Assembly: GCF_006345805.1 (NCBI RefSeq)
Contig: NW_021825264.1
Location: 1-16,124 of the forward strand
Length of the DNA: 16,124 bases
Direction: 5' to 3'
From: Octopus sinensis
Lineage: Eukaryota
Shown here in pieces: positions 1 to 16,124 of the stretch (position 1 is its first letter; the number at the start of each line of letters is the position of its first letter). Both the position numbers and the translations under genes were made by a program. A model generated the notes under the pieces. The model made no database searches, was not told the DNA's origin, and worked only from the letters and a program-made list of their open reading frames with translations.

Positions 1-91
1 TGCGCGCGTGCGCGTGTTTGTTGTGTGTGCGTGCGTGCGTGTGCGTGTTGCGTGTGCGTGTGTGTGTCTGTGTGGTGTGTTTGTCTGCGTG
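1..91. repeat. (GT/GC)n compound microsatellite
   Basis: Degenerate GT/GCGT repeats directly visible. Confidence 0.9.
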
Positions 92-404
92 TATCTTTTA
101 AAATCTTCCGATTTTTGGTGACTTATGAAATAGACATTTCGTTTTGTAACCGAAAATGAAGCGAAAGAGGTTAGCTAAGCTACTGTAGCGTTCGATTGTA
201 TCTTCAGACAACTGAACGACTCCATTTAATTCATCAGAAGTTACTTAGACTTCTTCTCTCTGTCTGTCGTCTCTCTCTCTTCTCTGTCTTTTCGCTCTCT
301 CTCTGTCTGTATTTAACTCACTATATAACATATGAGTTTCTCTCTCTCTCAATATAAACTATTCTTCTCTATTATTACCCGTTGCTAAGCAACACAGGGA
401 AAAG

Positions 405-748
405 GTGTGTGCGTGTGTGACTGTATTTTCAATTGTGTGTGTGTATGTGTGCGTTTGTGCCTTTCGACACCAGTGCGTGCGTAACGACACACACACAAAC
501 GCCCACAAGCATACACACACAAAATTGAAAATGCACAGTTACACACTCAAACACTCACACACAGAAACGAAAATACACACGCACACATAAATAAAAACAG
601 TCACACATACACACTGAAATGAAAATACTCACACACACTCACACTCACACATGCACACATGCATACGGACAAACACCACACACACACACACAAAAAAGGA
701 AAATACACAGTTACACACTCACACACACACGCTCACACGCATACACTA

Positions 749-784
<36 letters not shown>

Positions 785-870
785 ACAAGTAATGAACTGG
801 AAACACGCGCGCACGCAGACACAGAAATGAAAACACACATATGTGTGTGTGTTTGTGTGTGTGTATGTAT
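405..870. repeat. CA/GT-rich compound minisatellite, copy 1 (core GAAAATACACAGTTACACAC), first unit inverted
   Basis: Core recurs at about 527, 568, 620, 699 and 829. Positions 415-447 are the approximate reverse complement of 510-546. Confidence 0.75.
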
Positions 871-875
871 GAATA

Positions 876-1087
876 GATTTGGTTGATGGAAACTGAAAGA
901 AGCCCATCGTATATAAATGTATACATATATGTGTGTGTGAGTGTGTGTGTCTGTTTCCCCTCACCCTCCAACATCGCTTGACAAGAACCGCTAGGTTTAA
1001 AATAATGTCTTGGGATTGATTTGCTCGACTAAATGCGGTGCTCCAGCATGGCCACAGTCAAATGACTGAAACAAGGAAAATCAAAAA
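876..1087 (+). mobile_element. Octopus-type SINE, 5'-truncated and internally deleted
   Basis: GGAAACTGAAAGAAGCCC..CATCGCTTGACAA..GTGCTCCAGCATGGCCACAGTCAAATGACTGAAACAAG matches the octopus SINE as recalled. It is homologous to 9140-9341, which has about 70 extra internal bases. Confidence 0.75.
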
Positions 1088-1104
1088 CATATATATATAT
1101 ATAT

Positions 1105-1180
1105 GTTCTTTTATTTTACTTGTTTCAGTCATTTGACTGTGGCCATGCTGGAGCACCGCATTTAGTCAAGCAAATCGATC
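1105..1180 (-). mobile_element. Inverted SINE 3' tail (right arm of palindrome)
   Basis: 1119-1180 is the reverse complement of 1014-1075 with 2 mismatches. Confidence 0.85.
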
Positions 1181-1219
1181 AGGGCCTTCAAGAAGGCTGT
1201 CCATATGCTAGAAATAGCA

Positions 1220-1372
1220 GGCAAAGTCGACCTCGCGGAATTTGAACTCAGAGCGTAGCGGCAGATGAAATACCTATTTCTTTACTACCCACAAGAGGCT
1301 AAACACAGAGGGACAAACAGACAGACATACGGATTAAGGCGATTATATCGACCCCCATTGCGTAACTGGTAC
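1220..1372 (-). mobile_element. Second octopus tRNA-derived SINE family fragment, segments in permuted order
   Basis: Minus strand contains the B-box-like CTGAGTTCAAATTCCGC and GTACCAGTTACGC..GGGGTCGAT. Homologous to 10645-10730. Confidence 0.7.
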
Positions 1373-1374
<2 letters not shown>

Positions 1375-1428
<54 letters not shown>

Positions 1429-1540
1429 TATATGTATATATATACAAATTGATATAGGGTGTAATAAATATTATCTGATAATTGATATTTGATTTAGATG
1501 TTTCTCCATTTTCTCATGTTGTATATGTATGTATATATAT
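1375..1540 (+). repeat. Left target-site duplication of the RTE: (TA)n plus ~75-bp unique motif
   Basis: 1445-1517 matches 5650-5725, both are preceded by (TA)n, and they flank the element directly. Confidence 0.75.
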
Positions 1541-1595
1541 CTCTTCTCTTCTCCCCGTCTGTCTTGATAGACAATGGTTGCGCCAAGTGTGGGGC

Positions 1596-4500
1596 CTACT
1601 TTGATGATGTGCTGCGTCTGCTGTGACTGAACAGTCCAATTCTAGAGTGGCAGTCCCTGGTACAGTTGCTGCACACGAACATCGATGGGTACGTGTGGGG
1701 TGTTGCTGCAGTTGTCCTCCTCCTGTCCTGCCTGTCCGACCACGGCTGTGCTCTCCTTTCCTCAGCCATGGAAACGCCTTTCCTCACTGTCCGACGCCAG
1801 GCAGAGCAGTCAGCAGCTGTTACCTCCCACGTGTCCACACAGATGTTGGCAGTCCTCAGGTCGCGCTTGCACACATCCCTGTATCGTAGCTGTGGACGTC
1901 CCTTGGGTCGGGATCCCGTGGTGAGTTCGCTGTACAGGATGTCTTTAGGTATGCGACCGTCCTGCATGCGGCAGACGTGTCCGAGCCAGCGCAGTCGTCT
2001 CCGCACGAGGAGGGCATGCATGCTTGGCATATTAGTCTGTTCCAGGATGACTCCGTTTGGTACTGGGTCCTTCCAGGAGATGCCAAGGATCCGTCGAAGA
2101 CACCCGCATGTGGAAGCCGCTGAGGCGGCATTCCTGCCGGGTGTATGTTGTCCAGCTCTCGCTGCCGTAGAGTAGGGTGCTCAGCACGCAGGCTCGGTAC
2201 ACTGCGATCTTGGTGGTTATTGTGAGCATGTTGTTTTCCCACACTCTCCTGGAGAGCTTAGCCATGGCAGCAGCAGCCCTCCCAATCCGTCTGTTCAGCT
2301 CCGGCTCGAGGGACAGGCTGCTGGAGACCGTCGATCCCAGGTAAGTGAACTCGTTCACCACCTGCAAGCTGTGGTCGCCGACACTGATGCTGGGGACCCC
2401 TCCGACGTCCTGGCCCATGATCTCTGTCTTTTTCAGGCCGATGGTAAGGCCGAACTCTTGGCAGGCATCCGCCAGGGAGCTGAACAGCCTCTGGAGACCC
2501 GGCTGGTTGTGTGATGTTAGGGCGGCATCGTCAGCAAAGAGGATCTCTCTGATCAGCACCTGACGGACTTTGGTCTTAGCTCTGAGCGTCCAAGATTGAA
2601 CAACCCACCATCAGCCCTGGTGTGGAGGAACACTCCGTCGTCGGACGTTCTGAAGGCATAGGACAGGACAAGGGAGAAGAAAATTCCGAAGAGCGTCGGC
2701 GCCAGAACGCAACCCTGTTTCACTCCACTCTGGATGGCGAACGACTCCGAGGGCAATCCGTCAAACTGCACTGTTCCCTGCATACCGTATCGTGAAAGGA
2801 GGTGATGAGTTTCAGCAGTCTGGGAGGGCAACATATCCTACCCAGGAGCGCAAACAGCCCCTCCCTGCTGACTGAGTCGAACGCCTTAGCCAGGTCGATG
2901 AAGGCCACGTATAGGGGCTGTCTCTGTTCTCGACTCTTTTCTTGAAGCTGCCTGAGTGAGAAGATCATGTCGATTGTAGACCTCTCTGCCCTAAAGCCAG
3001 ACTGAGACTCGGGGTACACACGCTCTGCAAGCATTTGCAACCTCTTCAGGACCACCCTGGCAAATGCCTTACCGACAGTGCTGAGCAGGGATATGCCCTT
3101 GTAATTATTACAGTCGCTTCTGTCCCCTTTGTTTTTATACAGTGTGATGATGTTTGCGTCACGCATATCCTTAGGGACAGAGCCCTCCTCCCAGCACTGA
3201 CAGAGCAGCTCGTGGAGATGGCCCAGAAGGGCTGGCTTCCCGCACTGGATGACTTCTGCGGGGATGCCGTCTTGCCCTGGTGCCTTGCCCCGAGCGAGTG
3301 AGTCAATTGCTTTGCTCAGTTCTTCCTTTGTTGGAGGCAGGTCAAGCTCCTCCATGACAGGCAGAGCAGGAATGCCGACGAGGGCAGACCTGGTGACCAC
3401 ATTCTCAGTGGAGTAGAGGTTCTGGTAATGCTCGACCCACCTCTCTATCTGCTTCGCTTGGTCCTTGATGACCTCGCCATCCCTGGACTTCAGTAAAGCA
3501 ACCTTGCTGACAGTGGGCCTGAATGCTTTCTTCATCCCCTCGTACATCCCTTTCACGTTACCACTGTCAGCACAGCACTGGATGTTCTGGCATAGGTTCT
3601 GCCAGTAGATGTTGGCGCAACGTCTGGCCGTCCTCTGGGCGTCACTTCTGGCTGTTCTTAGTAGCCAGGTTCTTTTCTGATGGGTCGCGCTTATAGTTGA
3701 CCAGTGCTTCCCTCTTGGCAGCAATGACAGGCTCCATCTCAGGCAGGTGAGCCTCAAACCAGTCTTGATTTCTCCGCTCCCTCTTTCCTAGGGATGACAT
3801 GACTATTCTGCAAGTGGTGTCGCGAATAAGCTGCCATCTCTCCTCGATGGACGTGGCTGCGTGATCTTTAAGGGCCTCCTCCATGCGGTTGGTGAATTCC
3901 GAGCGGAGGTCGGGGTTGGTTGTCCTGGCGGTGTTGATGCGTGGGCGGCTTTTCCCTACGGGACGGCGGATTTTCTTTGGGGCCAATCGGACCCTACTGC
4001 ACACCAGAGAGTGGTCTGTATCACAGTCAGCACCATGGTAGCTGCGTGTGAGAAGCACACTGCCGAGGTGGGCTCGCCGGGTGATGACCATGTCCAGTTG
4101 GTGCCAGTGTCCGGACCTTGGGTGCCTCCATGAGACCCGGTGTTGTGGCTTAGTCGTGAAGAATGTGTTGGTAACGCAGAGTTTCCGGTAAGAGCAAAGC
4201 TCCAACAGTCTCTGGCCATTCTCATTCATCTTCCCCACGCCAAAGCGTCCAAGGCAGTCTGGCCATGCCCCATGATCGAATCATCCCACCCTTGCGTTGA
4301 AGTCGCCCAGAAGGAAGATGGGCTCCGACCCTGGTATCTGGCTGATGGTGGCGCCGAGCTCCTCATAGACCCGGTCTTTTATTTTCTGAGGAGAGTGGAG
4401 TGTTGGGGCATAAGCACTAATTATGTTTACCTTCCCGTTGATGTTGCAAGGCCAAGAGTGAGGATGCGCTCTGAGCCATTTGAAGGAGGGATCGCCATGG

Positions 4501-4849
4501 GGAGCAAGCTGTTCCTCACGGCAAACCCCACGCCATGCTGGCGGGCCTCCTCGACGGGTCTCCCCTGCCAGTAGAAGGTGTAGTCCTTCTCCCGTAGCAT
4601 GCCGTCTGCGGCGAGCCTGGTCTCTTGCAGCGCCGCTATGTCGATGTTCAGCCTTTTCAATTCGGTGTTGATGACTGCTGTCTTCCTACTGTCGTTCATC
4701 TGTCGTAGATCGTCAATGATGCCAGGGCACATGGTCCTGACATTCCAGGTGGCCAGTCGCAAGACTGGACACTGGGTATTTGTTTTTCCTTTGTTTGCTG
4801 GTGCAGGGTTTTCAGTCTGCTTTTCAGATTTTGTCCTAGCTCCAAGCAC
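1596..4849 (-). pseudogene. RTE ORF (~1080 codons): AP endonuclease, reverse transcriptase and C-terminal zinc finger; frameshifted as assembled
   Basis: Endonuclease motifs TWNVRT, ALQETR, SAYAPT, GDFNARVG, HQLDMVI, DTDH. RT motifs KGKAPGQDGIPAE, GISLLS, QSGFR, FIDLAKAFDSV, GVKQGCVLAP, LFADD, FTYLGS. C-terminal CSNCTRDCHSRIGLFSH. Lesions near 4440, 4282, 3662, 2788, 2586 and 2103. Confidence 0.95.
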
Positions 4850-5406
4850 CCATTGAAGCGGGCAGTCTGTGGCGGCTTAGCACCATTATTGGCCGGGGGC
4901 TGCCCAGCTTAAGGCGGGCGGTAGCTGACCAGTGGGACTTCAATGATCCCTCCCACCGTTAGAGACCCGTAGCGCCCGGGATTACGCCAATTCACCCTGG
5001 CTTAAAACTCGTAACTGCCATCTCAGCTTGTTCCATCGATGGTAGTTTCTCCATGGCGCAAGCCTGGGCGGTAGGAACGAAGACACTGGGCTGCCCAGAC
5101 ACCAGAATCTCCCTCTCGGGCCCCCAGACATAATCCAAAGAATGCAGTGCAGTACGTTTGGAGTCTGGTTGGCTGCAGGAGTTGCCGGAAAAGGGTCGAG
5201 ATTCGACACCCTACCGCCTTCAGGGCTCCACTCCGGATTTTCTGTCTGGGTTTACTCCCATAGCCTTTCCCTCTCCCAAGAGCATCCGCAAGGCAGCGGA
5301 GCGAGGGTTGGAGTCAGAGTTTTCCTTCTCCTAGACTGGCTGTCAACCAAGGCTAACGAGCCCAGTCTGCCCACCCGGTTATACCGCCAAGCACCCGGTC
5401 GCGCCA

Positions 5407-5582
5407 CACAGCAGGCTCAGTGAGAACAGGGGGTACCGCGTGAAGGTGCTGCTGTGGACACAGTAGTGCAGGAGGGGCCATAAGCAAGAACTTTCCGCAA
5501 GGCGCATCCAGGTAGAAGTTCTGCAGCGATCATTACACCTGGAGAGGAGAGGCTATGAGAGACGCAATCATTTTCCTTGCCC

Positions 5583-5585
<3 letters not shown>
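5407..5585 (-). ncRNA. HDV-like (CPEB3-type) self-cleaving ribozyme at the RTE 5' end
   Basis: Manual fold on the minus strand. P1 GGGGGGC(5585-5579)/ACCCCCU(5434-5428) with G1.U wobble. P2 CACAGCAG(5456-5449)/CUGCUGUG(5414-5407). P3 ACC/GGU. L3 UUCACGC(5444-5438). GU after P1. J4/2 CUGA with putative catalytic C5420. G1 is the first base of the element. Confidence 0.8.
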
Positions 5586-5620
<35 letters not shown>

Positions 5621-5760
5621 ATATATATATAGTATATATAATATATATACAAATTGATATAGGGTTTAATAAAGTATTATCTGATAATTGATATTTGATT
5701 TAGATGTATTTCTCCATTTTCTCATCTTTCTATCTTGTATATTTATATAATATATATACT
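5586..5760 (+). repeat. Right target-site duplication of the RTE: (TA)n plus unique motif
   Basis: 5650-5725 matches 1445-1517 and shares GATATAGG and GATATTTG with it, unlike the third copy at 7197-7270. Confidence 0.75.
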
Positions 5761-5762
5761 AT

Positions 5763-5799
<37 letters not shown>

Positions 5800-5850
5800 T
5801 GTATATATATATATATTTGTGTGGTGTGTGTGTGTGTATATATATAATAT

Positions 5851-5887
<37 letters not shown>

Positions 5888-6043
5888 GTAGTTGTATATA
5901 TTTAACAAGATATTTAACAAGATAAAGGTTTTATTTTTTATGGACTTGAAAATTGCTAGAAAATGAAGGATCGTGGCAAAGTTTGGCTGCTATTTCTAGC
6001 ATGTAAAAATTACCTGTTATGGGCAATTTTCTATTTTGAAATG

Positions 6044-6084
<41 letters not shown>

Positions 6085-6164
6085 GTGTTTTTGTGTTGTT
6101 GTGTGTGTTTGTGTGTGTGTGTGTGTGCGCGAGCGTGCGTGTGTGTGTGTGTGTGTGTGCGTGT

Positions 6165-7112
6165 CTGTGCGTGTGTGACTGTATTTTCAATTGCGTGTGT
6201 GTATGTGTGCGTTTGTGCCTTTCGACACCAGTGCGTGCGTGCGTAACGACACACACACAAACACTCACACACATTCATGCACAAAATTGAAAATGCACAG
6301 TTACACACTGAAACACTCACACACAGAAACGAAAATACACACGCACACATAATTAAAACCAGTCATAAACACACACAGAAATTAAAATACTCAGACACAC
6401 TCACACTCACACACATACGGACAAACACACACACACACAAATGAAAATACACAGTTACACACTCACACACACACGCCCACACGCACGCCCACACGCGTAC
6501 ACTAGCGCGCGCACACACACACACACGCACAAACAATGAACTGGAAACTCGCGCGCACGCAGACACAGAAATGAAAACACACATATGTGTGTGTGTTTGT
6601 GTGTGTGTATGTATGAATAGATTTGGTAGATGGAAACTGAAAGAAGCCCATCGTATATAAATGTATACATATATGTGTGTGTGAGTGTGTGTGTCTGTTT
6701 CCCCTCACCCTCCAACATCGCTTGACAAGAACCGCTAGGCTTAAAGATAATGTCTTGGGATTGATTTGCTCGACTAAATGCGGTGCTCCAGCATGGCCAC
6801 AGTCAAATGACTGAAACAAGGAAATCAAAACATTAATATATATATATGTTCTTTTATTTTACTTGTTTCAGTCATTTAATTGTGGCCATGCTGGAGCACC
6901 GCATTTAGTCAAGCAAATCGATCAGGCCTTCAAGAAGGATATCCATATGCTAGAAATAGCAGGCAAAGTCGACCTCGGCGGAATTTGAACTCAGAGCGTA
7001 GCGGCAGCCGAAATACCTATTTCTTTACTACCCATAAGAGGCTAAACACAGAGGGGACAAACAAGACAGACATACGGATTAAGGCGATTATATCGACGCC
7101 ATTGCGTAACTG

Positions 7113-7194
<82 letters not shown>

Positions 7195-7290
7195 TACAAA
7201 TTGAGACAGGGTTTAATAAAGTATTATCTGATAATTGATTAATGATTTAGATGTATTTCTCCATTTCTCATTTGTATATGTATGTATATA
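6165..7290 (+). repeat. Tandem/segmental duplication unit, copy 2 (no RTE inserted)
   Basis: Co-linear with 405-1540, including the SINE at 6620-6830, palindrome arms 6759-6820/6862-6923, the SINE at 6962-7116, (TA)n and the motif at 7197-7270. Confidence 0.95.
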
Positions 7291-7314
7291 TATATATATA
7301 TAATATATATATAT

Positions 7315-7360
<46 letters not shown>

Positions 7361-7362
<2 letters not shown>

Positions 7363-9080
7363 CTTAGATAAACTTAGATATGTTTTCGACCAAAGATGGT
7401 CCAGGCCATGTCTAACTTAATAGCACCACCTGATAGGATTATTCGAATCCTGTTTAAGTCAAGTTTTGTTCAAGTAGTGAGTTCTTGTTGGGTGAGTTAT
7501 ATCCAATTATGGGTGGCTTATCTGGTATTCTTTGAGGAATCTATCCAGACTCTGTTTAAAGTTGATGGGATCCTTTTCCTCTTTGATCTCTCTCGGGACA
7601 ATGTTAAATAGGGCAGGGCCTGTTGAGGAAAAGAAATTGTGCTGCAGTGTACATGTATGTTGTGATCTTGAATTGGGCAGGGACGTATAGCCCGTGGTCC
7701 AAGTCTTGGATGAACCTTGAAGCTAATGTTTAGGTCGTTTGGGCAAAGTTGACGGTATATTTTCCACATCGTACAAATGATGTACCGCTCACGGCGACGC
7801 TGGAGGGAGTAAAGTTTCAAGGCTTTAAGGCGATCCCAATAATCGAGAGCAGCCATGCCTTCAATGCGTTTAGTGAGTGCCCTCTGGGGTGACTCAATTC
7901 TGGAGATGTTTTGTCTTGTTTGAGGAGACCACAGTGGGCAGCAGTATTCAAGGTGTGGCCGTACAAGGAGCAAAAAAGTGGTATGATGACACCTTGTTCT
8001 CTGGACCGGAAAGTTCTTAAGATCCAGGACCCATCCTACGAGCTATATCGACCTTCTGTTGATGTGTTGCACTCCAACTGAGATCGTCATCAACAATTAC
8101 ACCCAGGTCTCTGATATTGTTAGAGGCTGTGAGCTTTCCCCTGAAGGAAGAGAGTATGGCTGTTTTAGTGAGGAGTTTCTTCCAAAATGCATCAGCTCAA
8201 ATTTTCCCCTCGTTCAGTTGCATTTTATTTCTGTCTGCCCATTGACTCACAGCATATAGATCAGACTGGAGTTGAGTTCGGTCTGCTTCTTCATTGACGA
8301 TTTGCTGGAGTTGGTGTCATCAGCAAATATTTTCACTTTGCAGTAATGTACGACACTGAAAGGTCGTTTATGTTGATTATGAAGAGTAGCGGACCCAAGA
8401 CAGTCCCCTGGGGGACACCGCTGGTGACTTTGCTGGGCTTGAGTGGACTCCATCAACTACAACATGTGTTCTATTCGCCAGGAAATACTTAATCCAGTGT
8501 AGAACTTTTCCACGGATTCCAACATTTGCCAATTTTGAGAGTAGGATATTAGGTCTACCCTGTCGAACGCTTTACTGAAGTCAAGATATATGACATCAGA
8601 GTTCGAACCTGTTCCCAAGGCTTTGAGTACATCTTCAATGTGGTGTAAGAGCTGTGTTAGACAGTCCCTGCCACAGCGAAAGCCATGCTGATTTGCATTT
8701 AGTAGTTTTCTGGGTCTCCAGAAGTCAGCCATCCTTGATCTTAACACTCTTTCAAACACTTTGATGATGTGGGAGGTGAGTGAGATTGGGCGATAGTTGA
8801 GTGCGAGGGATCCGTTTCCCTGTTTGAAAACCGGGATGATTGACTGGGATAGAAACTGTTTTTGGTATATAACCTGCATCTAATGAATTCCTCCATAGGT
8901 GGTCAGTGGGACAGCAAGTTGGTGTTTACATTCCTTCAGGAGACTAACGGGGAATCTATCAGGCCTACGGCAGAGTAGTATTTGACCTCATTTATTGCTG
9001 CTACGATGCCAGTGGGAGTGAAGGTTATGTCTGCAATTTTGTGTTGGGAGTCACTAAAGACAGCAGTATTGTTTCTGCAA
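7361..9080 (-). mobile_element. 5'-truncated CR1-type LINE (RT and C-terminus, frameshifted)
   Basis: RPISLTSHIIKVFER, NQHGFR, YLDFSKAFDRV, KIFADDT, RPHLEYCCPLWSP, RLKALKLYSLQRRRER. The 3' end is a 10-bp tandem tail (AACTTAGATA x2, 7361-7380). TA runs lie at both ends. Confidence 0.92.
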
Positions 9081-9139
9081 TATATATAGAGAGAGAACAT
9101 GTATATACATATAGATATTTATATATATGTATATGTGTG

Positions 9140-9341
9140 TATGTTTCGGTGTCCCCAAAACCGCTGGACAACCAATGCCGGTGTTTTTTACACTCCATTA
9201 ACTTATCCGTTCGGGAAAAGAAGACCAACAGAATTAATACTAGACTGACGCAGATAAAAGTCTTAGTGTCGATTTGCTTTAGAAAAGGCTGTGCTCCAGC
9301 ATTGGCACAGTGAAATGACTAAACAAAGAAAAGAGTAAAAG
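9140..9341 (+). mobile_element. Diverged octopus-type SINE, 3' half
   Basis: Homologous to 876-1087 (GTCGATTTGC..GTGCTCCAGCA..CACAG..AAATGACT..AAAAGAGTAAAAG). Confidence 0.75.
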
Positions 9342-9427
9342 TGTATGCGTTACGTCTGAACATTGTATTGTAGAGTTAATTAGCTTCCATAATACATTTT
9401 GATGATAGTTGTCACGTAACTAAATGT

Positions 9428-9740
9428 AAGGGAGGTAACTTTTGAAGATTTTTAGTTGTCTCCCTTTCTAGAGTTACTCCCCTTGAATATTATAATTTAT
9501 CAATAGTTAATAGTAATTTAATTAAATTTAAGGGAAGTAACTCTGGAAGATTTTAAAGTTATCTTCCTTCGTAGAGTTACTTACCTTGCATATTTATTTA
9601 ATAATAATATGCAAGGGGGAGTAACTCTAGAAAGGGAAATAATTAAAAAATCTTCCAGAGTGACCTCCCTTAGATCTAATAAAATTATTTTTACGTATTA
9701 TTAAATTATAATATTCAAGGGAAGTAACTCTAGAAAAGGA
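9428..9740. repeat. Modular foldback palindrome with seven alternating AAGGGRAGTAACTCT-like motifs
   Basis: Motifs at 9428(+), 9470(-), 9530(+), 9573(-), 9612(+), 9657(-), 9716(+). Arms 9461-9594 and 9606-9740 are reverse complements by eye. Confidence 0.85.
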
Positions 9741-9754
9741 AATAGGTACAAAAT

Positions 9755-9840
9755 TTAGGGTTAAGGTTGGGGTTAGGGTTTAAGGTTAAGGGTTTAGGGT
9801 TAGGGTTAGTGTTTAAGGTTAGGGGTTGGGGTTAAGGGTT
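9755..9840 (+). repeat. Degenerate interstitial telomeric repeat (TTAGGG and variants), G-rich on +
   Basis: TTAGGG, TTAAGG, TTGGGG and TTTAGGG units directly visible. Confidence 0.85.
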
Positions 9841-9990
9841 CTTCAAGAGCTGCACTTAATGTTGCGTGTGTCCGTGTTTCTGGGTCGCAATTTTTGAACC
9901 ATTCGTAAAGCATCAGGTAGACTTGTTTTACAGCGTCAATAGACTCATCATCAATTTTCAGTTCAGTTGTATCAACTCCTAAAAAAATAG
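9839..9990 (-). pseudogene. Truncated exon encoding the C-terminal half of a death-domain-like fold
   Basis: Phase-1 acceptors TTTCGCAG| (exon start 9990) and TTTTTTTAG| (start 9978) are in the same frame. Translation AIFLGVDTTELKIDDESIDAVKQVYLMLYEWFKNCDPETRTHATLSAALEE fits the death-domain pattern LG..I....Q.Y.ML..W......T...L..AL. It runs straight into the telomeric tract with no convincing donor. Confidence 0.6.
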
Positions 9991-10310
9991 CTGCGAAATA
10001 CGCAACAATAAGAAATAAATGCAACAACCTTAACAATATTAACAATAATATAAAAGATGTGTGTTGTTATAAACATAACAAAGAAACTATTTCAAGAGAG
10101 AAATATAAAAAATAGCTAAGAAACAAGAAAACTATAAGACATTGTTATTTATATCTTTATAAATCCGAGTAAAATTACATAATGGATTTTAAAAACAGAA
10201 AAAATGAAATAAAATTTATGTTCCTGAAACAAAAAAGTGAAACAGAATGTATACTCATACGTGTGTGTATTGTGTCGATGTATATATAATAAAAAAACAG
10301 TCTATATATT

Positions 10311-10331
10311 TATACTGGCGACAAGTGCGAG
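10311..10331 (+). pseudogene. Displaced 3' end of the EGF exon (YTGDKCE)
   Basis: TAT ACT GGC GAC AAG TGC GAG completes the minus-strand EGF at 10732-10820 in frame with canonical Cys5-x8-Cys6 spacing. Confidence 0.55.
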
Positions 10332-10574
10332 TGTCATAGCTTATTATACATTGATTCGTATATGGCTTCCTTTATTGAATTCTAATTTAGAAAGATTGAA
10401 ATCAATTCACTATTCACGAGTGAGTTCATATTCTTATGTATATGTACATATAAACACATTAAACAAGAAAGAATGTCTTTATGTATTGTCATGCGTGTGT
10501 TTATATGTGTGTGCGTGTGTTATATTAGTTCTCAACAAGACATATTGGTACAAGGTTATCAAGGTAACAATGTC

Positions 10575-10576
<2 letters not shown>

Positions 10577-10634
<58 letters not shown>

Positions 10635-10647
10635 TTATTATTATTAC
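10577..10647. repeat. (ATT)n microsatellite
   Basis: More than 20 near-perfect units visible. Confidence 0.95.
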
Positions 10648-10730
10648 GTTCTGAGTTCAAATTCCGCCGAGGGGTCCTACCGGGGTCGATTAAATAAGTA
10701 CCAGTTACTCGCTGGGGTCGATGTAATCGA
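10645..10730 (+). mobile_element. SINE fragment (same family as 1220-1372)
   Basis: TTACGTTCTGAGTTCAAATTCCGCCGAGG..GGGGTCGATTAAATAAGTACCAGTTAC..GGGGTCGATGTAATCGA. Confidence 0.75.
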
Positions 10731-10820
10731 ATTCTGGTTTGCACGCACAACGGTAGGAACCTAGGAAATTCTGACATATGGCACCATAACGACAAGGATT
10801 CCTTAAACACTCGTTGATGT
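10731..10820 (-). pseudogene. Calcium-binding EGF-like domain exon, broken after Cys5
   Basis: Acceptor CATTTTTCAG| in phase 1, typical of EGF modules. Translation (D)[29 protein letters not shown] has the DINEC start and the C-x-N-x4-Y-x-C-x-C motif. Confidence 0.85.
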
Positions 10821-10897
10821 CTGAAAAATGAAACCGAAATTTTATTATTTTCAAAATTATTTGAAGCAAAGAAAGAGTATTTCAATGGAAATTGAGC

Positions 10898-11197
10898 CCT
10901 AACTCTACCCCTAACCCCTAACCCGAACCCCTTCTGTAACACTGAACCCCCGAGACCACTTCTGTGACCACCCGAGACCCCATCTGTGACCCCACTTCTA
11001 GAGACTAACCCAAACCCCTGACCATGTGAGCCCCTCATCCCTGTGACAAGCGAGACCCCTTCCTGTGCCCAACCAATTCCGGAGACCCCACCAATTCCCG
11101 AGACCCCACCAATTCCGGAGACCCCACCAATTCCCGAGACCCCACCAATTCCCGAGACTAACCCTAACCCTAACCCTAACCCTAACCCTAACCCTAA
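10898..11197 (-). repeat. Telomeric-repeat / minisatellite composite, G-rich on -
   Basis: CCCTAA variants at 10898-10930, degenerate CCGAGACC..CTGTGAC units, an 18-mer CCAATTCC(G/C)GAGACCCCA x4.8 at 11073-11158, and perfect (CCCTAA)6 at 11162-11197. Confidence 0.9.
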
Positions 11198-11620
11198 GCG
11201 TGCAGAACGCTTTCATCGCTCTGCGCACATGTCGGGTAGGTCGGTCAGAGAGCACTTCCGTGCTTGTAGAGTTTATCTCGAACCGGCAGTGCCTCCCGAT
11301 AGCACTGCAAAGCACGGGACTTCTAGGAGTTATCCATCGTCCCCATCTTGAAAGTCCTCCTCAACAGACTGGTTAGTTCAATTTTGTCAATGCCTAGCGT
11401 CTCTCCAAGTGCTTCATCGCACTTTCCCTACACTAACCCTCCATAGAACTCAAGAGTGGACTTTCCACTGATCCTTGACCCAGGACTGCAGCTTACTCAA
11501 GGAGATGAGCCGTGGAAAAGCCTGTTTGACAAACGATGACCACACTTGTTCACCGTTTACGCAGAATGTTTGGAGATGCCGCAGCCCCAGTGCATGTCTT
11601 CCACAGCATGCCCAGTGTTC
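11198..11620 (-). mobile_element. Decayed Tx1-like (L1 group) LINE ORF2 C-terminal fragment including the zf-RVT region
   Basis: Manual translation: HALGLRHLQTFCVNGEQVWSSFVKQAFPRL..EFYGGLV*GKCDEALGETLG..QCYREALPVRDKLYKHG..CAQSDESVLHA. Homologous to the 14235-15300 copy. Confidence 0.75.
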
Positions 11621-11679
11621 CGGAAATCGGAAAGCGAAAGCACAAAGACGTAAATTGGAAAAGGGAAAAGTAAAACAGT

Positions 11680-11860
11680 CTTTAAGAGTTCTCCATGTTA
11701 GACCTTGAATTATAAGGCTAAAAAGATATCAAAAATCTAATCAAGAAGAGACGGAATTTTCCAGATCTTCAAAATATATTTATACTTGACAACGACTGAA
11801 AATTCCTGACCTAGAGTCCAATAGAGAATTAAGCATCTTAGATCTGAACAGGATATGCAC
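11680..11860 (+). mobile_element. Possible highly decayed CR1/L2-like 3' ORF remnant
   Basis: Weak resemblance across frames (HVRP..KDI..QRLKIPDLES..ILDL) to the CR1/L2 C-terminal YVRPxLEY..ERLKxLxLxSL..DL. Could be chance. Confidence 0.25.
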
Positions 11861-12462
11861 TCTTTCAGCTAAACAAAGCATATATTTATTCGATCCATTC
11901 ACATAAATTATGGATTCTCAATTACTTCCCATCCAGTCACATGTGGTGTTTCGTTTTCTTCCAAACTTAGCCAGTTTCGTAGCTTTACTTTTGTCCTATG
12001 TCGGAAGGGGATTATGTGATTGGCATAACGACTTTTAAATTCACCTTAAATAAGCGAAAGAATAAAAGAATAAAAGAAAATGTGTGTGTGTACATGCATA
12101 CAAAAATACACCCACATACGCACGGATATGTACATAAGCGCGCACACACACACATATAGGCGTATGCATTTATTGTTTCGGTAAGTTGTGTCCACGAGAA
12201 AGACACTTCCAGTGCTCTCATCTGAGAAGCACCAGCATTAACCAGGGGTTAACATTGCGACAGACTGGTATCCTGTGAGTTGTATCCTTGTGTGTTGAAA
12301 TACGTTCGATACCGAGATATACTGGGGGCCTAATGAGCCTGTAGATCAGGCAGAGAATTTAGCTTAGAAAATACTTTAATGTAGACATTTAGGCATGCGC
12401 AGTTAAGTGTTTCTGTAACGTTTATGGAGTGAAAGTCGATATGAATATGACAAAAAAAGAAA

Positions 12463-12545
12463 TACCGTATTTTCCGGTGTATAAGCCGCTATTTTTTACC
12501 TGGGAAATTTAGTGTGCCTCTTAGAGAAAGGTGCGCCTAATGTGT
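12463..12545 (+). mobile_element. Solo left TIR of a Tc1/mariner-pogo (Tc2-like) DNA transposon
   Basis: TA|CCGTATTTTCCGGTGTATAAGCCGC plus downstream GGTGCGCCTAAT resembles Tc2/pogo termini as recalled. No partner TIR seen in the window. Confidence 0.55.
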
Positions 12546-12831
12546 GTATCTTTTTTTATAAGTTCCAGGAGGAAAATTATTTGTTAGGGAGATCGAATAA
12601 TTCCACTGATTTTTTCAGAGAAAAGGTCGGTCGATGAAAGACTATTGCTACAGTACATTGGTGCCTGGAAGAAAACAATGCACATTTGTTTTGTTTTACC
12701 TTCATGTTTTGATAAGGTTTTTTTTATCCAATAAAGAATTTAATATTGACGGAATGTAAAACAAGTGTCAACCTGACAATCGACAAGTGAACACATTCCA
12801 AATAGCTAATATGTGTGTGTGTCTATGTACG

Positions 12832-12837
12832 CATATA

Positions 12838-12924
<87 letters not shown>

Positions 12925-12934
12925 CACACACAGA

Positions 12935-12968
<34 letters not shown>
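12832..12968. repeat. Long (TA)n microsatellite
   Basis: Directly visible. Other (TA)n tracts are at 7117-7196, 7280-7360, 13950-14018, 15303-15357 and 15955-16124. Confidence 0.95.
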
Positions 12969-12970
<2 letters not shown>

Positions 12971-13480
12971 CATATGCAATACATATGAAATATCCAAAAT
13001 TGCATTTACAAATGCATAATATATACATACAAGCTCTTACATACATACATGCAAACACACACACATATACGCACAATATATATACATATAAACTCCTACA
13101 TTAATACACAGTATTAAAAACATTAAGTAGTCAGCATATATATATAGATACCCACAGAAATATAAATATATATAACACGCATCCCAAATTTATTCCAAGT
13201 ATTATGATCAATCGATTAAGATTGTTAGTAGTACAAAAAATCGGGTCGGTATTTTTCTTAGTATTTCACTTTTGTTAATTATTGTTTGAAGCCGAGAAGG
13301 GTCAAATGACATTAGAGACGGTTGAAAAGCAAAAATTTGAAGTGATTTCGCATCTGTTCGTAAAAGTTAGTGAATGTTTATATATATATATATGTGCGCA
13401 TATATATATATTGCGTCATTTGTTTTATTTACCATACATTTTTTCATTCAAGTAGCGGAACACAACGCACACAATAATGC

Positions 13481-13557
<77 letters not shown>

Positions 13558-13559
13558 GA

Positions 13560-13938
13560 TTGGCGTCTTTATTTCTCATTATATGAATGCGATATGAAAA
13601 GTTTGCGTCAGCAGTCAAAGATGGGCGTTGATAGTGGAAGAGTGTAAATAAGAGAGGGGAAAGAAAGTGATAGAAAGAGAGAGGGAGGGTGGGAGAAAGA
13701 AGAGGTAGTGGGTTTTGTGTGTGTATGTGTGTGTGTATATGCGTAACTGTATGAGACTGTTTGCCTCCGCGGAACTGAAATTAACTTGAAATAATCTAAG
13801 TATTATTTTACAAATTGTGATATCTCTGCGTGTGTGTGTATATGTATGTATATATATACCACACGACACACACAGTTATCAGAATTATATATACGTATAT
13901 ATTCATGTATATGTATATATCTATATACACACACACAC

Positions 13939-14020
<82 letters not shown>
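13560..14020 (+). repeat. Older duplication unit, copy 1 (paralogous to 15357-16124)
   Basis: TGGCGTCTTTATTTCT..TCAGCAG, AGTGGAAGAGTGTAAAT, AACTTGAAATAATCTA..ATTGTGATATCT and CACACAGTTATCAGAATTATATATACGTAT all recur in order at 15357-16070. Confidence 0.85.
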
Positions 14021-14021
<1 letters not shown>

Positions 14022-14234
14022 ATACATTTATGCACAGTTTGGTGTGTGTGTGCCGAATCACTGAAATCTGAAATATTAGAAGAAATTTACCAAAAACTTT
14101 CAACCATGATATGTGTATATGTCCTGGTGTGTGTTTGTGTTGTGTGTAATGTGTGTGTGTGATGCAATGAGATACATAACAATGCCTAAGTGTTTCTTTA
14201 ATATAAAACTGAAGTGAATATTAATGATAATGTT

Positions 14235-15300
14235 AAATGACATAATTTTTCTGTGAAGGAGGTTTAGTCTTCAATGATTTCAGTCTCATCCACCACTGTA
14301 CTTCTTTAGCCACCGGGCAGAAGAAACTGCTTTTCATTCCCGACCAAAAGAAGGTGGCGGGGCGATCTTTACAATGAACTCGGCTCGTAAACTGGACGGA
14401 TGAGTGCATGGAGGACTACTTCATCGCCCTGCTTACAACCCAAACATATCCGTCCGACAACACTTTCGTATCTGTAGAGCTTGTCTTGAATCGGCAGAGC
14501 TCCCCGGTAGCGCTGCCAGGTCAGGGATTCCTGGAAGTTAATGACCAGTTAGTTGATTCCCTCCCCCTTCCCCCCCCCTTCGTCGTTGTTCTTTCCCCTC
14601 TACTAATCCCCTATAGAAATCCATGGTGGAACTTTCAACGCCCGCGTTGCCCGACTGGCAGAAAGCTGTGAGAGCTTGCCGACACACGCTTCACTCAGTA
14701 CTGTAGCTTCATCAGTGAGACGAGCTGCGGAAACTCCCGTTTGACAAACAGTCAATCCCCCATGCTCACCGTTAAAGAAACGCAGGAGATGTTCGCAGTC
14801 TCAGCGCATGTCTGCGAATCATTAGCAACGGCATGTACAGTACTCCACTGAGAGGTTGTTGACAGCAGATAGAACGTCTGATGTGCGGAACACGTCCCTT
14901 CTTTAGAAAGCGGAATAACAAACGCTCTAACTTTATCGGGCATGGGACAACATTCAGGCAGTCATAGATGAGGGAAGCGATGTACGCATTCGCCACCTCG
15001 ACTCGACCCTTCACGAACAGCTTCCTCTCTGCCAATTTCTGGGTGAGATCGACTATCCTGTCCGTCACCTCCTAGCCGTTGTTGTCCACCTCGGAGTCTA
15101 GAGCAGACCAGACCCCAAACAGTTTAACCTTTCCGTTTAGCGCCCTACAAACTGTCGGTTGGTATGGGTCTGCCTCTCCATCTGCCGAGTTGCAGGCCCA
15201 CCGACATCTCTTGGATAAGCTTTGCTCCTATCAACGCTTCGTGGACAGTATTATGATGACGTAGTCCGTGTTAGCTGATACAAACATTCCACATCCTAAG
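14235..15300 (-). mobile_element. Decayed Tx1-like LINE ORF2 fragment (RT C-terminus to zf-RVT)
   Basis: Degenerate YADD region (VSANTDYV), SVGLQLGRWRG, VKLFGVW, ERKLFVKGRVEVAN, RRHALRLR, DFYRGLVEG, YRGALPIQDKLYR, VAKEVQWWMRLK. Many stops and indels. Confidence 0.85.
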
Positions 15301-15356
15301 ACATATATATATATATATATAGTATATATATATATATCTATATATATATATATATA

Positions 15357-15984
15357 TGGCATCTGTATTTCTAATTTTATTATTTCGATTTGAAAAGTTG
15401 CACTCAGCAGTTTTTGATGATGGCGGAGGAATTGTAAGAGTTAAAAGGAGAGAGGGAGAGAGGGAGTGATAGAAGAGAGAGAGATGAGAAAGAAGATGAG
15501 GTAGGTTGATGTGTACGATTGTGAGTGTGTGCGTGTGTGTGTTTTTGTGTGTGATGCAATTAGATACTAGTGGAAGAGTGTAAATGAGAGAGGGGAAAGA
15601 AAGTAATAGAAAGAGATGGAGTGAGAGAGGGAGAAAGAAGAGGGAGAGGGTTTTGTGTGTATGTGTGTGTGTGCGTGTATGTGTTTGTGTGATGCTATTA
15701 GCTACTTAACCATGCTCTAAGCAGTTAGTGGGAAGGATACATGTCAATTCCCTTCATTTACTCGGTATACCCTTCTTCTTCCCCAGATTAGCATTCCAGC
15801 AGTAATGGAGAAATAAAATTGTGTCACTGTCTGCTTGTGTTGTGTGTATGTATATGTGTGTGTATGTATATGTGTGTGTATAAGCGTAACTGTAACTGAG
15901 AGTAACTTGAAATAATCTAGGTACTATTTTACAATTGTGATATCTGTGTGTGTGTATATATATGTATATATATATAATATATAT

Positions 15985-16019
<35 letters not shown>

Positions 16020-16072
16020 GAACACGCACACACAGTTATCAGAATTATATATACGTATGTATCATGTATATG

Positions 16073-16110
<38 letters not shown>

Positions 16111-16124
16111 CATATATATATATA
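15357..16124 (+). repeat. Older duplication unit, copy 2, with an internal extra GA/GT unit and an unrelated insert
   Basis: Matches 13560-14020. The GA-tract+GT-tract+GATGC(A/T)ATTAG unit is tandemly repeated (15415-15567, 15568-15705). The segment at about 15706-15830 has no counterpart in copy 1. Confidence 0.8.

Follow-up and report, generated by a model that had tools for sequence, protein, structure and literature searches.

Does the first part of an octopus retrotransposon encode a ribozyme that would cut the element's RNA out of a longer transcript? The question is raised by a 16,124-nt stretch of Octopus sinensis DNA (NCBI RefSeq assembly GCF_006345805.1, contig NW_021825264.1, positions 1 to 16,124; hereafter the window). 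In this stretch a first-pass annotation, made from the sequence alone, had read positions 5407-5585 of the minus strand as a self-cleaving, HDV-like (hepatitis delta virus-like) ribozyme that defines the exact 5′ end of an RTE-clade long interspersed nuclear element (LINE). Our analyses point to the same answer for the family as a whole: its first ~180 nt most probably encode a working HDV-like (delta-like) ribozyme, of the type that has a large J1/2, the segment joining helices P1 and P2, and lacks helix P4. Confidence is lower for the decayed copy in the window. We infer self-cleavage from structure and comparison; co-transcription with upstream sequence and further roles of the fold are proposals.

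The host element

The window is octopus DNA bearing a dead copy of an RTE-clade LINE, that is, a retrotransposon without long terminal repeats (non-LTR).

1521..5585, minus strand: RTE-clade non-LTR retrotransposon with the putative ribozyme, delimited by its open reading frames (ORFs), the GC block, homologues of its apurinic/apyrimidinic endonuclease (APE) and reverse transcriptase (RT), and the extent of homology among paralogues

Positions ~1521-5585 form a block of 55% GC amid AT-rich surroundings, and the minus strand of this block holds the APE and RT reading frames in broken pieces. The layout is a 5′ untranslated region (UTR) of ~736 nt, followed by the APE/RT frames, and the element ends in a short run of (AT)n/(ATAC)n. 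The minus-strand ORFs match Exo_endo_phos (PF03372) and RVT_1 (PF00078) proteins of the RTE type, and the host is thus an APE/RT non-LTR retrotransposon. The best protein matches come from Octopus sinensis itself, with 96-97% identity and the labels 'craniofacial development protein 2-like' or 'uncharacterized', while the next-best relatives, at 55-75%, are RTE-type APE/RT proteins of many marine animals. The predicted ribozyme occupies the first 179 nt of the element. Its core in the window is identical to the family consensus, and four copy-specific changes lie in J1/2.

Architecture of the predicted ribozyme

Read in the 5′ to 3′ direction of the RNA, the predicted ribozyme has the following parts.

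5585-5579, minus strand: 5′ strand of P1, GGGGGGC, as read from the sequence; G5585 is G1, the first base of the RTE, with predicted cleavage 5′ of it
5578-5457, minus strand: J1/2 peripheral domain, 122 nt, partly conserved, with two to three predicted hairpins (alignment, RNAalifold)
5456-5449, minus strand: 5′ strand of P2, CACAGCAG (sequence, covariation, RNAalifold)
5448, minus strand: C5448, the partner of G5416, directly after the 5′ strand of P2
5447-5445 and 5437-5435, minus strand: P3, ACC/GGU, with two of its three pairs covarying
5444-5438, minus strand: loop L3, UUCACGC, with its U, C and G invariant
5434-5428, minus strand: 3′ strand of P1, ACCCCCU (sequence and pair counts)
5427-5426, minus strand: GU after P1 (P1.1), invariant, giving one C-G pair (C5442-G5427) and a U.U
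5425-5421, minus strand: linker UCUCA in the place of P4, 5 nt long in four of four lineages
5420-5417, minus strand: J4/2, CUGA, with the putative catalytic C5420; its C and A are invariant
5416-5415, minus strand: G5416, which pairs with C5448, then the bulged C5415
5414-5407, minus strand: 3′ strand of P2, CUGCUGUG, and end of the ribozyme (sequence and covariation)

Re-reading of the strand placed every core element claimed by the first-pass annotation at these coordinates, and the strands follow each other in the order of a nested double pseudoknot (P1-5′, P2-5′, P3-5′, L3, P3-3′, P1-3′, P1.1, J4/2, P2-3′). P1 opens with G1.U (G5585-U5428), continues with five G-C pairs and closes with a C.A mismatch at its end. 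G1 lies at the predicted cleavage site, where a G.U closes P1 in the window and a G1-C pair does so in L036 and L048, two diverged relatives described below; G5585 is preceded by the final A of a (TA)n run. J4/2, which has the form CNRA, opens with C5420. In L3, U5444 and G5439 are the counterparts of the U20.G25 wobble in the CPEB3 ribozyme (numbering per PMC4836649), and the L3 C pairs with the G of P1.1; these positions fall in the invariant alignment columns 45, 50 and 47/62. The length of J1/2 in the other Octopus copies is 123 nt, against 122 nt in the window.

The P4 helix is absent, five unpaired nucleotides standing in its place. P4 does not define membership of the class, because the literature treats it as dispensable (PMC3774820, PMC10879173). 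An alternative register, in which CUC/GAG would form a 3-bp P4 and C5415 would be the catalytic base, was rejected: J4/2 is lost after this C, the hairpin is unconserved and the invariant C aligns with 5420. The same CUC/GAG pairing had been flagged as a competing mini-hairpin. It does exist in Octopus, but it is not conserved in the relatives and is therefore no part of the design. The bulged C in P2, which had been listed as another caveat, is equally real but proved to be a conserved feature, since a bulge after the G-C pair recurs in three of the four lineages (as C, U or G) and is missing only in L048.

The predicted cut site and the 5′ boundary of the family

Additional O. sinensis copies were drawn from the members of two protein clusters, and five independent insertions could be compared. 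These are the window locus, L001, L007, L010 and L011, where the window locus is taken together with its haplotig L012 and with L003 (O. sinensis CM016873), the orthologous locus, which is collinear over ~10 kb at ~96% identity and 98.8% identical in the element alone. The five full-length copies begin GGGGGGCAA(A)GG directly after AT-rich sequence, and their flanks beyond it are unrelated; the 5′ start of L011 reads AGGGGGC. L010 carries a clean target-site duplication of 10 bp, ATATAAATAT, whose end lies 1 nt before G1. To within 1 nt, the real 5′ terminus of the element therefore coincides with the predicted cleavage site, in agreement with the proposal that G1 (5585) is the insertion boundary. 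L005, L002, L006, L008 and L009 are 5′-truncated or rearranged and uninformative on the ribozyme.

We considered whether the (TA)n run in front of G5585 belongs to the element, and ruled this out. The 5′-truncated copy L009, which starts at element position ~196, also abuts (TA)n, and the target-site duplication of L010 is plain AT-rich sequence. The run therefore reflects a target preference. Insertion sites are (TA)n or AT-rich at window 5586-5640, L001:5088-5139, L007:4070-4108, L009:4075-4102 and L010:4912-4928. Together with the short (AT)n/(ATAC)n tail of the RTE, these sites suggest that TA microsatellites are targeted by annealing between tail and target.

Within the ribozyme, the Octopus copies show local damage: in L007 a C is missing from P1′, and L011 lacks G1 and carries an A-to-C change in P2. 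These differences look like decay after insertion.

A uniform 5′ end is equally expected from an internal promoter. It could then mark a transcription start, and the fold could be a conserved but non-catalytic RNA structure of the 5′ UTR, such as a protein site, a translation element resembling an internal ribosome entry site, or the promoter itself. In L1Tc, a promoter and a ribozyme are found within the same 77 nt (PMC3383444, PMC8256844). Moreover, a further conserved stem-loop, common to many RTE families without this module, lies in the ~130 nt of UTR that follow, so that the UTR clearly has other RNA functions. A non-catalytic structure, however, would have no reason to keep the unpaired nucleotides at the active-site positions of the HDV family, namely the U and G of L3, the C-G of P1.1 and the invariant C of CNRA. 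Nor do non-catalytic roles exclude catalysis, the known cases combining both. We consider it improbable that such a structure accounts for the module in place of a ribozyme.

Chance occurrence and compensatory changes in diverged relatives

How easily such a motif arises by chance was estimated with our own descriptor script. The strict descriptor asks for six or more contiguous P1 pairs, five or more of them Watson-Crick, a P2 of 7 bp or longer, U as the first base of L3, a G-C pair in P1.1, and CNRA. When the 4056-nt element was dinucleotide-shuffled 300 times (1.2 Mb), the descriptor found 2 matches, or ~1.6e-6 per position, a rate that serves as a loose guide given that the strict thresholds were set after the candidate was known. 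On 151.6 kb of real sequence read on both strands (303 kb), its matches were the 5′ ends of this RTE's copies only, every intact copy being matched, with zero background matches. A loose descriptor gave 225 matches in 1.2 Mb of shuffles (~1.8e-4 per position) and ~3 junk matches in the 32 kb of both window strands, and is nonspecific on its own. The descriptor match at the present locus starts at a position that had been fixed beforehand, the first base of the element, where a chance match is very unlikely.

Given that the Octopus copies differ by only ~4% (~96% identical), covariation within Octopus is uninformative, and we turned to diverged relatives. A protein-guided scan of metagenome contigs yielded 80 RTE loci. 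The strict descriptor independently picked L036:54-267, upstream of the APE ORF at a distance of ~790 nt, where the window has 736 nt. The L036 module has a seven-pair P1 (GGGGGGC/GUCCCCC), a J1/2 of 157 nt, the P2 strands CGUAGCAA/UUGCUACG, P3 GCG/CGC and L3 UUCCCGU, followed by GU, the 5-nt linker UAUGA, CAGA, and a G with a bulged U. By BLAST, the 5′ UTRs of L036, L048 and L016 are ~70% identical to the Octopus 5′ UTR across the ribozyme. All three share the same architecture, with a J1/2 of ~150 nt, 5 nt in the place of P4, and CNRA.

Pairing was counted on aligned constructs from which J1/2 had been removed, covering 20 pairs in 7 sequences of four lineages. Under the nested double-pseudoknot scheme, 92.8% of the cells are standard pairs, and six pairs, of which three belong to P2, two to P3 and one to P1, have changed on both sides. 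None of 500 shuffles attained the observed values of pairing and compensation. When the 3′ partners were slid by 1-3 columns as a control, 36-51% of the cells were paired, with 0-2 compensatory pairs. Conservation and covariation of P1, P2 and P3, which the first-pass annotation had proposed as a check, are thus borne out in the diverged relatives.

By helix, P1 is 85% paired across the lineages, and in L036 its G1-U has become G1-C and its C7.A has become C7-G. P2 is paired in 96.8% of the cells, with changes on both sides from A-U to G-C, from C-G to U-A and from G-C to A-U; RNAalifold recovered P2 and its covariation unaided from the full-length alignment. In P3, two of the three pairs change on both sides (ACC/GGU against GCG/CGC in L036). 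The C-G pair of columns 41/73 (C5448-G5416) is kept in 7/7 alignment rows.

The unpaired core shows no variation at all: in L3 this holds for the first U and for the C and G, and elsewhere for the P1.1 G, for the A just ahead of J4/2, for the catalytic C, and for the A of CNRA with the G next to it. J4/2 reads CUGA, CAGA, CAGA and CUAA in the four lineages, and therefore CNRA throughout, and the linkers in the place of P4 read UCUCA, UAUGA, UACCA and UUUCA, with their first U and last A invariant.

These results bear on the simplest alternative, namely that a 5′ run of G, for instance cap-derived or untemplated, happens to complement a run of C beside an ordinary hairpin. Such a reading can appeal to the junk rate of the loose descriptor and to the empty Rfam search reported below. 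It has to contend with the much lower rate of the strict descriptor at a pre-specified position, with the independent discovery of L036 at a similar distance upstream of its APE ORF, and above all with the compensatory changes in three helices, which effectively refute it. We regard its probability as negligible.

A covariance model of the 3′ core (CM R1), run over 332 kb of RTE loci, detected no further members. Weak antisense matches (E 0.05-0.2) occur upstream of APE in three related metagenome RTE loci, at L029:906-997, L052:1150-1241 and L026:825-916, on the minus strand relative to APE, and have AUGGCCCCUCC and an AGCAG/CUGCU stem in common. They are probably chance matches or a distant relic.

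Evidence against a working ribozyme

Several observations weigh against a ribozyme that works in Octopus. The covariance-model check with HDV and CPEB3, also named in the first-pass annotation, failed to return a match: Rfam gave no HDV, CPEB3 or drz match at gathering score over the whole window, nor at E ≤ 10 on 5350-5650 (301 nt) and 5400-5462 (63 nt), the E ≤ 10 output being (TA)n-driven noise only. This negative says little, because the models expect P4 and can neither bridge a 122-nt J1/2 nor encode the pseudoknot. The covariation comes from four lineages only, of which L048 and L016 have a decayed P1 or P3.

A further point concerns L004, an Octopus bimaculoides RTE with 66% RT identity, which has a different 5′ module. 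No HDV-like motif was found in its first ~140 nt (5011-5150), even with a relaxed descriptor. The 5′ UTR of L004 is homologous only from the window-equivalent position 5240 on, and its unrelated first ~140 nt follow a (TA)n(TG)n run. The L004 copy may be truncated, or it may carry a different 5′ module, 5′ modules having perhaps been swapped between families.

Folding raises additional doubts. The P1 of Octopus has 6 pairs only. J1/2 alone is no more stable than its shuffles (z = +0.67), although its hairpins show a few compensatory changes in RNAalifold. In drz-Agam-2-1, fast cleavage needs a stable J1/2 domain (PMC4908430). A J1/2 block conserved in the four lineages, AUGGCCUCUCCU (window 5470-5481, AUGGCCCCUCCU), can pair with the P1 G-run at 5579-5585, and both the unconstrained minimum-free-energy structure and the RNAalifold consensus do pair the G-run with this conserved GGCC(C/U)CUCC block (GGCCUCUCC). 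A U-to-C change of the window copy in GGCCUCUCC strengthens this alternative pairing. As modelled, the alternative helix between the P1 G-run and J1/2 is non-catalytic, and could be a folding trap or a switch.

Based on these observations, the module might be a relic, an ancestral RTE ribozyme that now cleaves poorly or not at all in Octopus and whose copies simply keep the sequence of their master. The 6-bp P1, the unstructured J1/2, the competing alternative P1 and the mini-hairpin would fit such a history, as would the tolerated copy-specific damage in L007 and L011, and at ~4% divergence the conservation among Octopus copies is silent on selection. On the other hand, the Octopus consensus core has all pairs and core nucleotides intact except for the terminal P1 C.A, and the full-length copies all end exactly at G1, as expected if the ribozyme of the master was working. 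The human CPEB3 ribozyme, which has the same terminal P1 mismatch (A30), does cleave, more slowly than the chimpanzee form (PMC4836649). We see only a slight chance that the Octopus module is such a relic, and retain the working ribozyme as the preferred explanation.

Proposed mechanism and known systems

If the Octopus module is a working ribozyme, the RTE would be transcribed inside a longer host or read-through transcript. The RNA would fold into the nested double pseudoknot, with P1 and P1.1 stacked on each other and P2 stacked on P3. C5420, together with Mg2+ at the L3 U.G wobble, would then catalyse scission immediately 5′ of G5585, freeing a 5′-OH RNA that starts with the element's first base. 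Once this RNA is reverse-transcribed to its end, every full-length copy would have an identical 5′ terminus. The fold may in addition help to initiate translation of the uncapped RNA, a role that has been suggested for R2 and L1Tc.

Such a role has precedents. HDV-like ribozymes have been known to cleave at RTE 5′ junctions since 2011, and release from co-transcripts is an established role of such ribozymes in R2, R4, L1Tc, baggins and RTE elements (PMC3774820 and PMC6765202, both citing Ruminski 2011). This agrees with the statement of the first-pass annotation that such ribozymes process the 5′ ends of R2 and some RTE elements.

An architectural parallel is found in silkmoth R2. The ribozymes of Bombyx mori and four other Bombycoidea, in which J1/2 measures 216-498 nt and P4 is missing, cleave in vitro, the RNAs of the five species having been run in co-transcription/self-cleavage reactions (PMC3774820). 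They share the very long J1/2 and the missing P4 with the window ribozyme, and little is conserved in their L4-J4/2 region beyond the catalytic C and one A, as is the case here. The ~120-nt J1/2 without P4 noted in the first-pass annotation is therefore real, but the combination is not new. R2 itself differs, as it belongs to another clade and is specific to 28S ribosomal DNA; many R2 elements use 28S sequence as the 5′ strand of P1 and cleave upstream of the junction, whereas the P1 of the window ribozyme is element sequence and cleavage is predicted at the junction.

With respect to host clade, a counterpart is drz-Agam-2 of an Anopheles gambiae RTE, which likewise sits at the 5′ terminus, cleaves at the junction, has a large J1/2 insertion and is presumed to release the element from co-transcripts. 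In drz-Agam-2-1, however, P2 has 12 bp and a stable, structured J1/2 (P1.2) drives fast cleavage (PMC4908430), whereas the window ribozyme has a P2 of 8+1 bp, no P4 and a J1/2 that is not predicted to be especially stable. A mollusc parallel exists in the abalone Haliotis discus, whose HDV-like ribozyme has exactly 5 nt in the place of P4, as in the window (Webb and Luptak 2011, as cited in PMC3774820). The minimal drz and theta ribozymes also lack P4 and have the catalytic C as the first base of J4/2, like the window ribozyme, but they are only ~50 nt long with a short J1/2, and occur in phage and metagenomic contexts, often beside tRNAs (PMC10879173). In the literature searched, we found no paper combining HDV-like ribozymes with cephalopods, and the first-pass annotation likewise knew of no case in a cephalopod LINE. 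Architecture and role are thus known, while the host appears to be new.

Resemblance to the CPEB3 ribozyme

The first-pass annotation had also pointed to the human CPEB3 ribozyme, for its similar L3 and its identical terminal P1 mismatch, and both points hold (PMC4836649; primer in PMC10919898). In human CPEB3, A30 produces the terminal P1 mismatch, U20.G25 forms the L3 wobble, P1.1 consists of one C-G pair and a U.U, and a 4-nt J4/2 begins at C57 (PMC4836649). The CPEB3 sequence used for the comparisons of this section was checked only against the numbering of PMC4836649 and the primer in PMC10919898.

On this basis, the P1 strand GGGGGCC of CPEB3 differs from GGGGGGC of the window by one flipped pair, with the terminal C.A as in the human allele. 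CPEB3 and Octopus have the same P2 strands, ACAGCAG/CUGCUG; L3 reads UUCACGU against UUCACGC, and P1.1 is GU in both. The P3 of CPEB3, GCG/CGC, is that of L036. By hand count, ~38 of 51 alignable positions of the CPEB3 core are identical in the window, and the variants of Octopus, L036 and L016 together cover almost every CPEB3 core position. CPEB3 differs in that it carries a P4 hairpin of 18 nt, lacks an insertion in J1/2, reads CGAA in J4/2, and lies in a conserved intron, not at a transposon end. The window ribozyme lacks the features of the CPEB3 family, which are a location in the mammalian CPEB3 intron, a P4 hairpin and a short J1/2. By the Rfam definition it falls outside that family, and the resemblance is one of sequence only.

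According to PMC8256844, which cites Webb 2009, the HDV-like family has just six invariant nucleotides, yet the two cores are closely alike, which hints at common ancestry. We raise tentatively, as an idea that seems to us doubtful, that the CPEB3 ribozyme and the RTE 5′ ribozyme share an ancestor, CPEB3 being the exapted remnant of an RTE-type 5′ end.

Other features of the element and the locus

Just downstream of the ribozyme, the minus strand contains a stem-loop at 5332-5369, followed by AGGAGAAGGAAAAC at 5331-5318. The stem-loop is kept in nine RTE families, mostly without the ribozyme module, and four of its eight stem pairs are compensatory. Within the 5′ UTR it may serve protein binding or translation. 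Directly upstream of the APE ORF, at window 4865-4915 (minus strand), there is another conserved non-coding block, with the pattern GCTGGGCAGCCCCC..CCAATAA..G.T....CCGCCAC. It also occurs in L004:5505-5555, L005:2992-3045 and L036:793-835, and is common to the Octopus families and the metagenome RTEs; L005 appears to start exactly at this block.

The surroundings of the RTE are repetitive. A ~160-bp sequence ending in (TA)n brackets the element (window 5586-5746 and 1377-1540; also 6942-7293), and the bracketing copies are ~96% identical outside the microsatellite. A larger repeat relates 408-1540 to 6166-7321, the third copy of the ~160-bp unit and ~1 kb of following sequence lying ~5.7 kb off at ~90% identity. 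The bracketing copies are either an unusually long target-site duplication or the result of insertion into a tandemly repeated unit.

At the C-terminus of the RTE (window 1596-1700, minus strand), a zinc-finger-like CxxC...H...H motif was found (FVCSNCTRDCHSRIGLFSHSRR). It recalls the C2H2 finger, reported as unusual for an RTE, of the octopus element RTE-2_OV (PMC9115989). RTE-2_OV has a 3327-nt ORF, UTRs of ~600 nt, the C2H2 finger and a microsatellite tail (PMC9115989), a layout similar to that of the window element. We sought its sequence in the supplements of PMC9115989 for a comparison of identity and found no matching strings there. A ribozyme is nowhere mentioned in that paper.

Implications for octopus retrotransposons

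For the octopus, self-cleavage from host or read-through transcripts would give a promoter-less RTE a defined RNA 5′ end. The ribozyme adds a mollusc lineage, with covariation support, to the HDV-like ribozymes that have a large J1/2 and no P4. It also places a close relative, by sequence, of the CPEB3 core within a mobile element, which bears on the origin of the mammalian ribozyme. RTE-2_OV, an RTE-clade LINE, has been proposed to be transcribed in the octopus brain and perhaps to be active there (PMC9115989). Should RTE-2_OV and the window element belong to one family or to sister families, the 'expression' of RTE-2_OV could stem in part from the transcription of host genes, and its RNA would begin with a 5′-OH and not with a cap, which would affect how its transcripts are detected and quantified.

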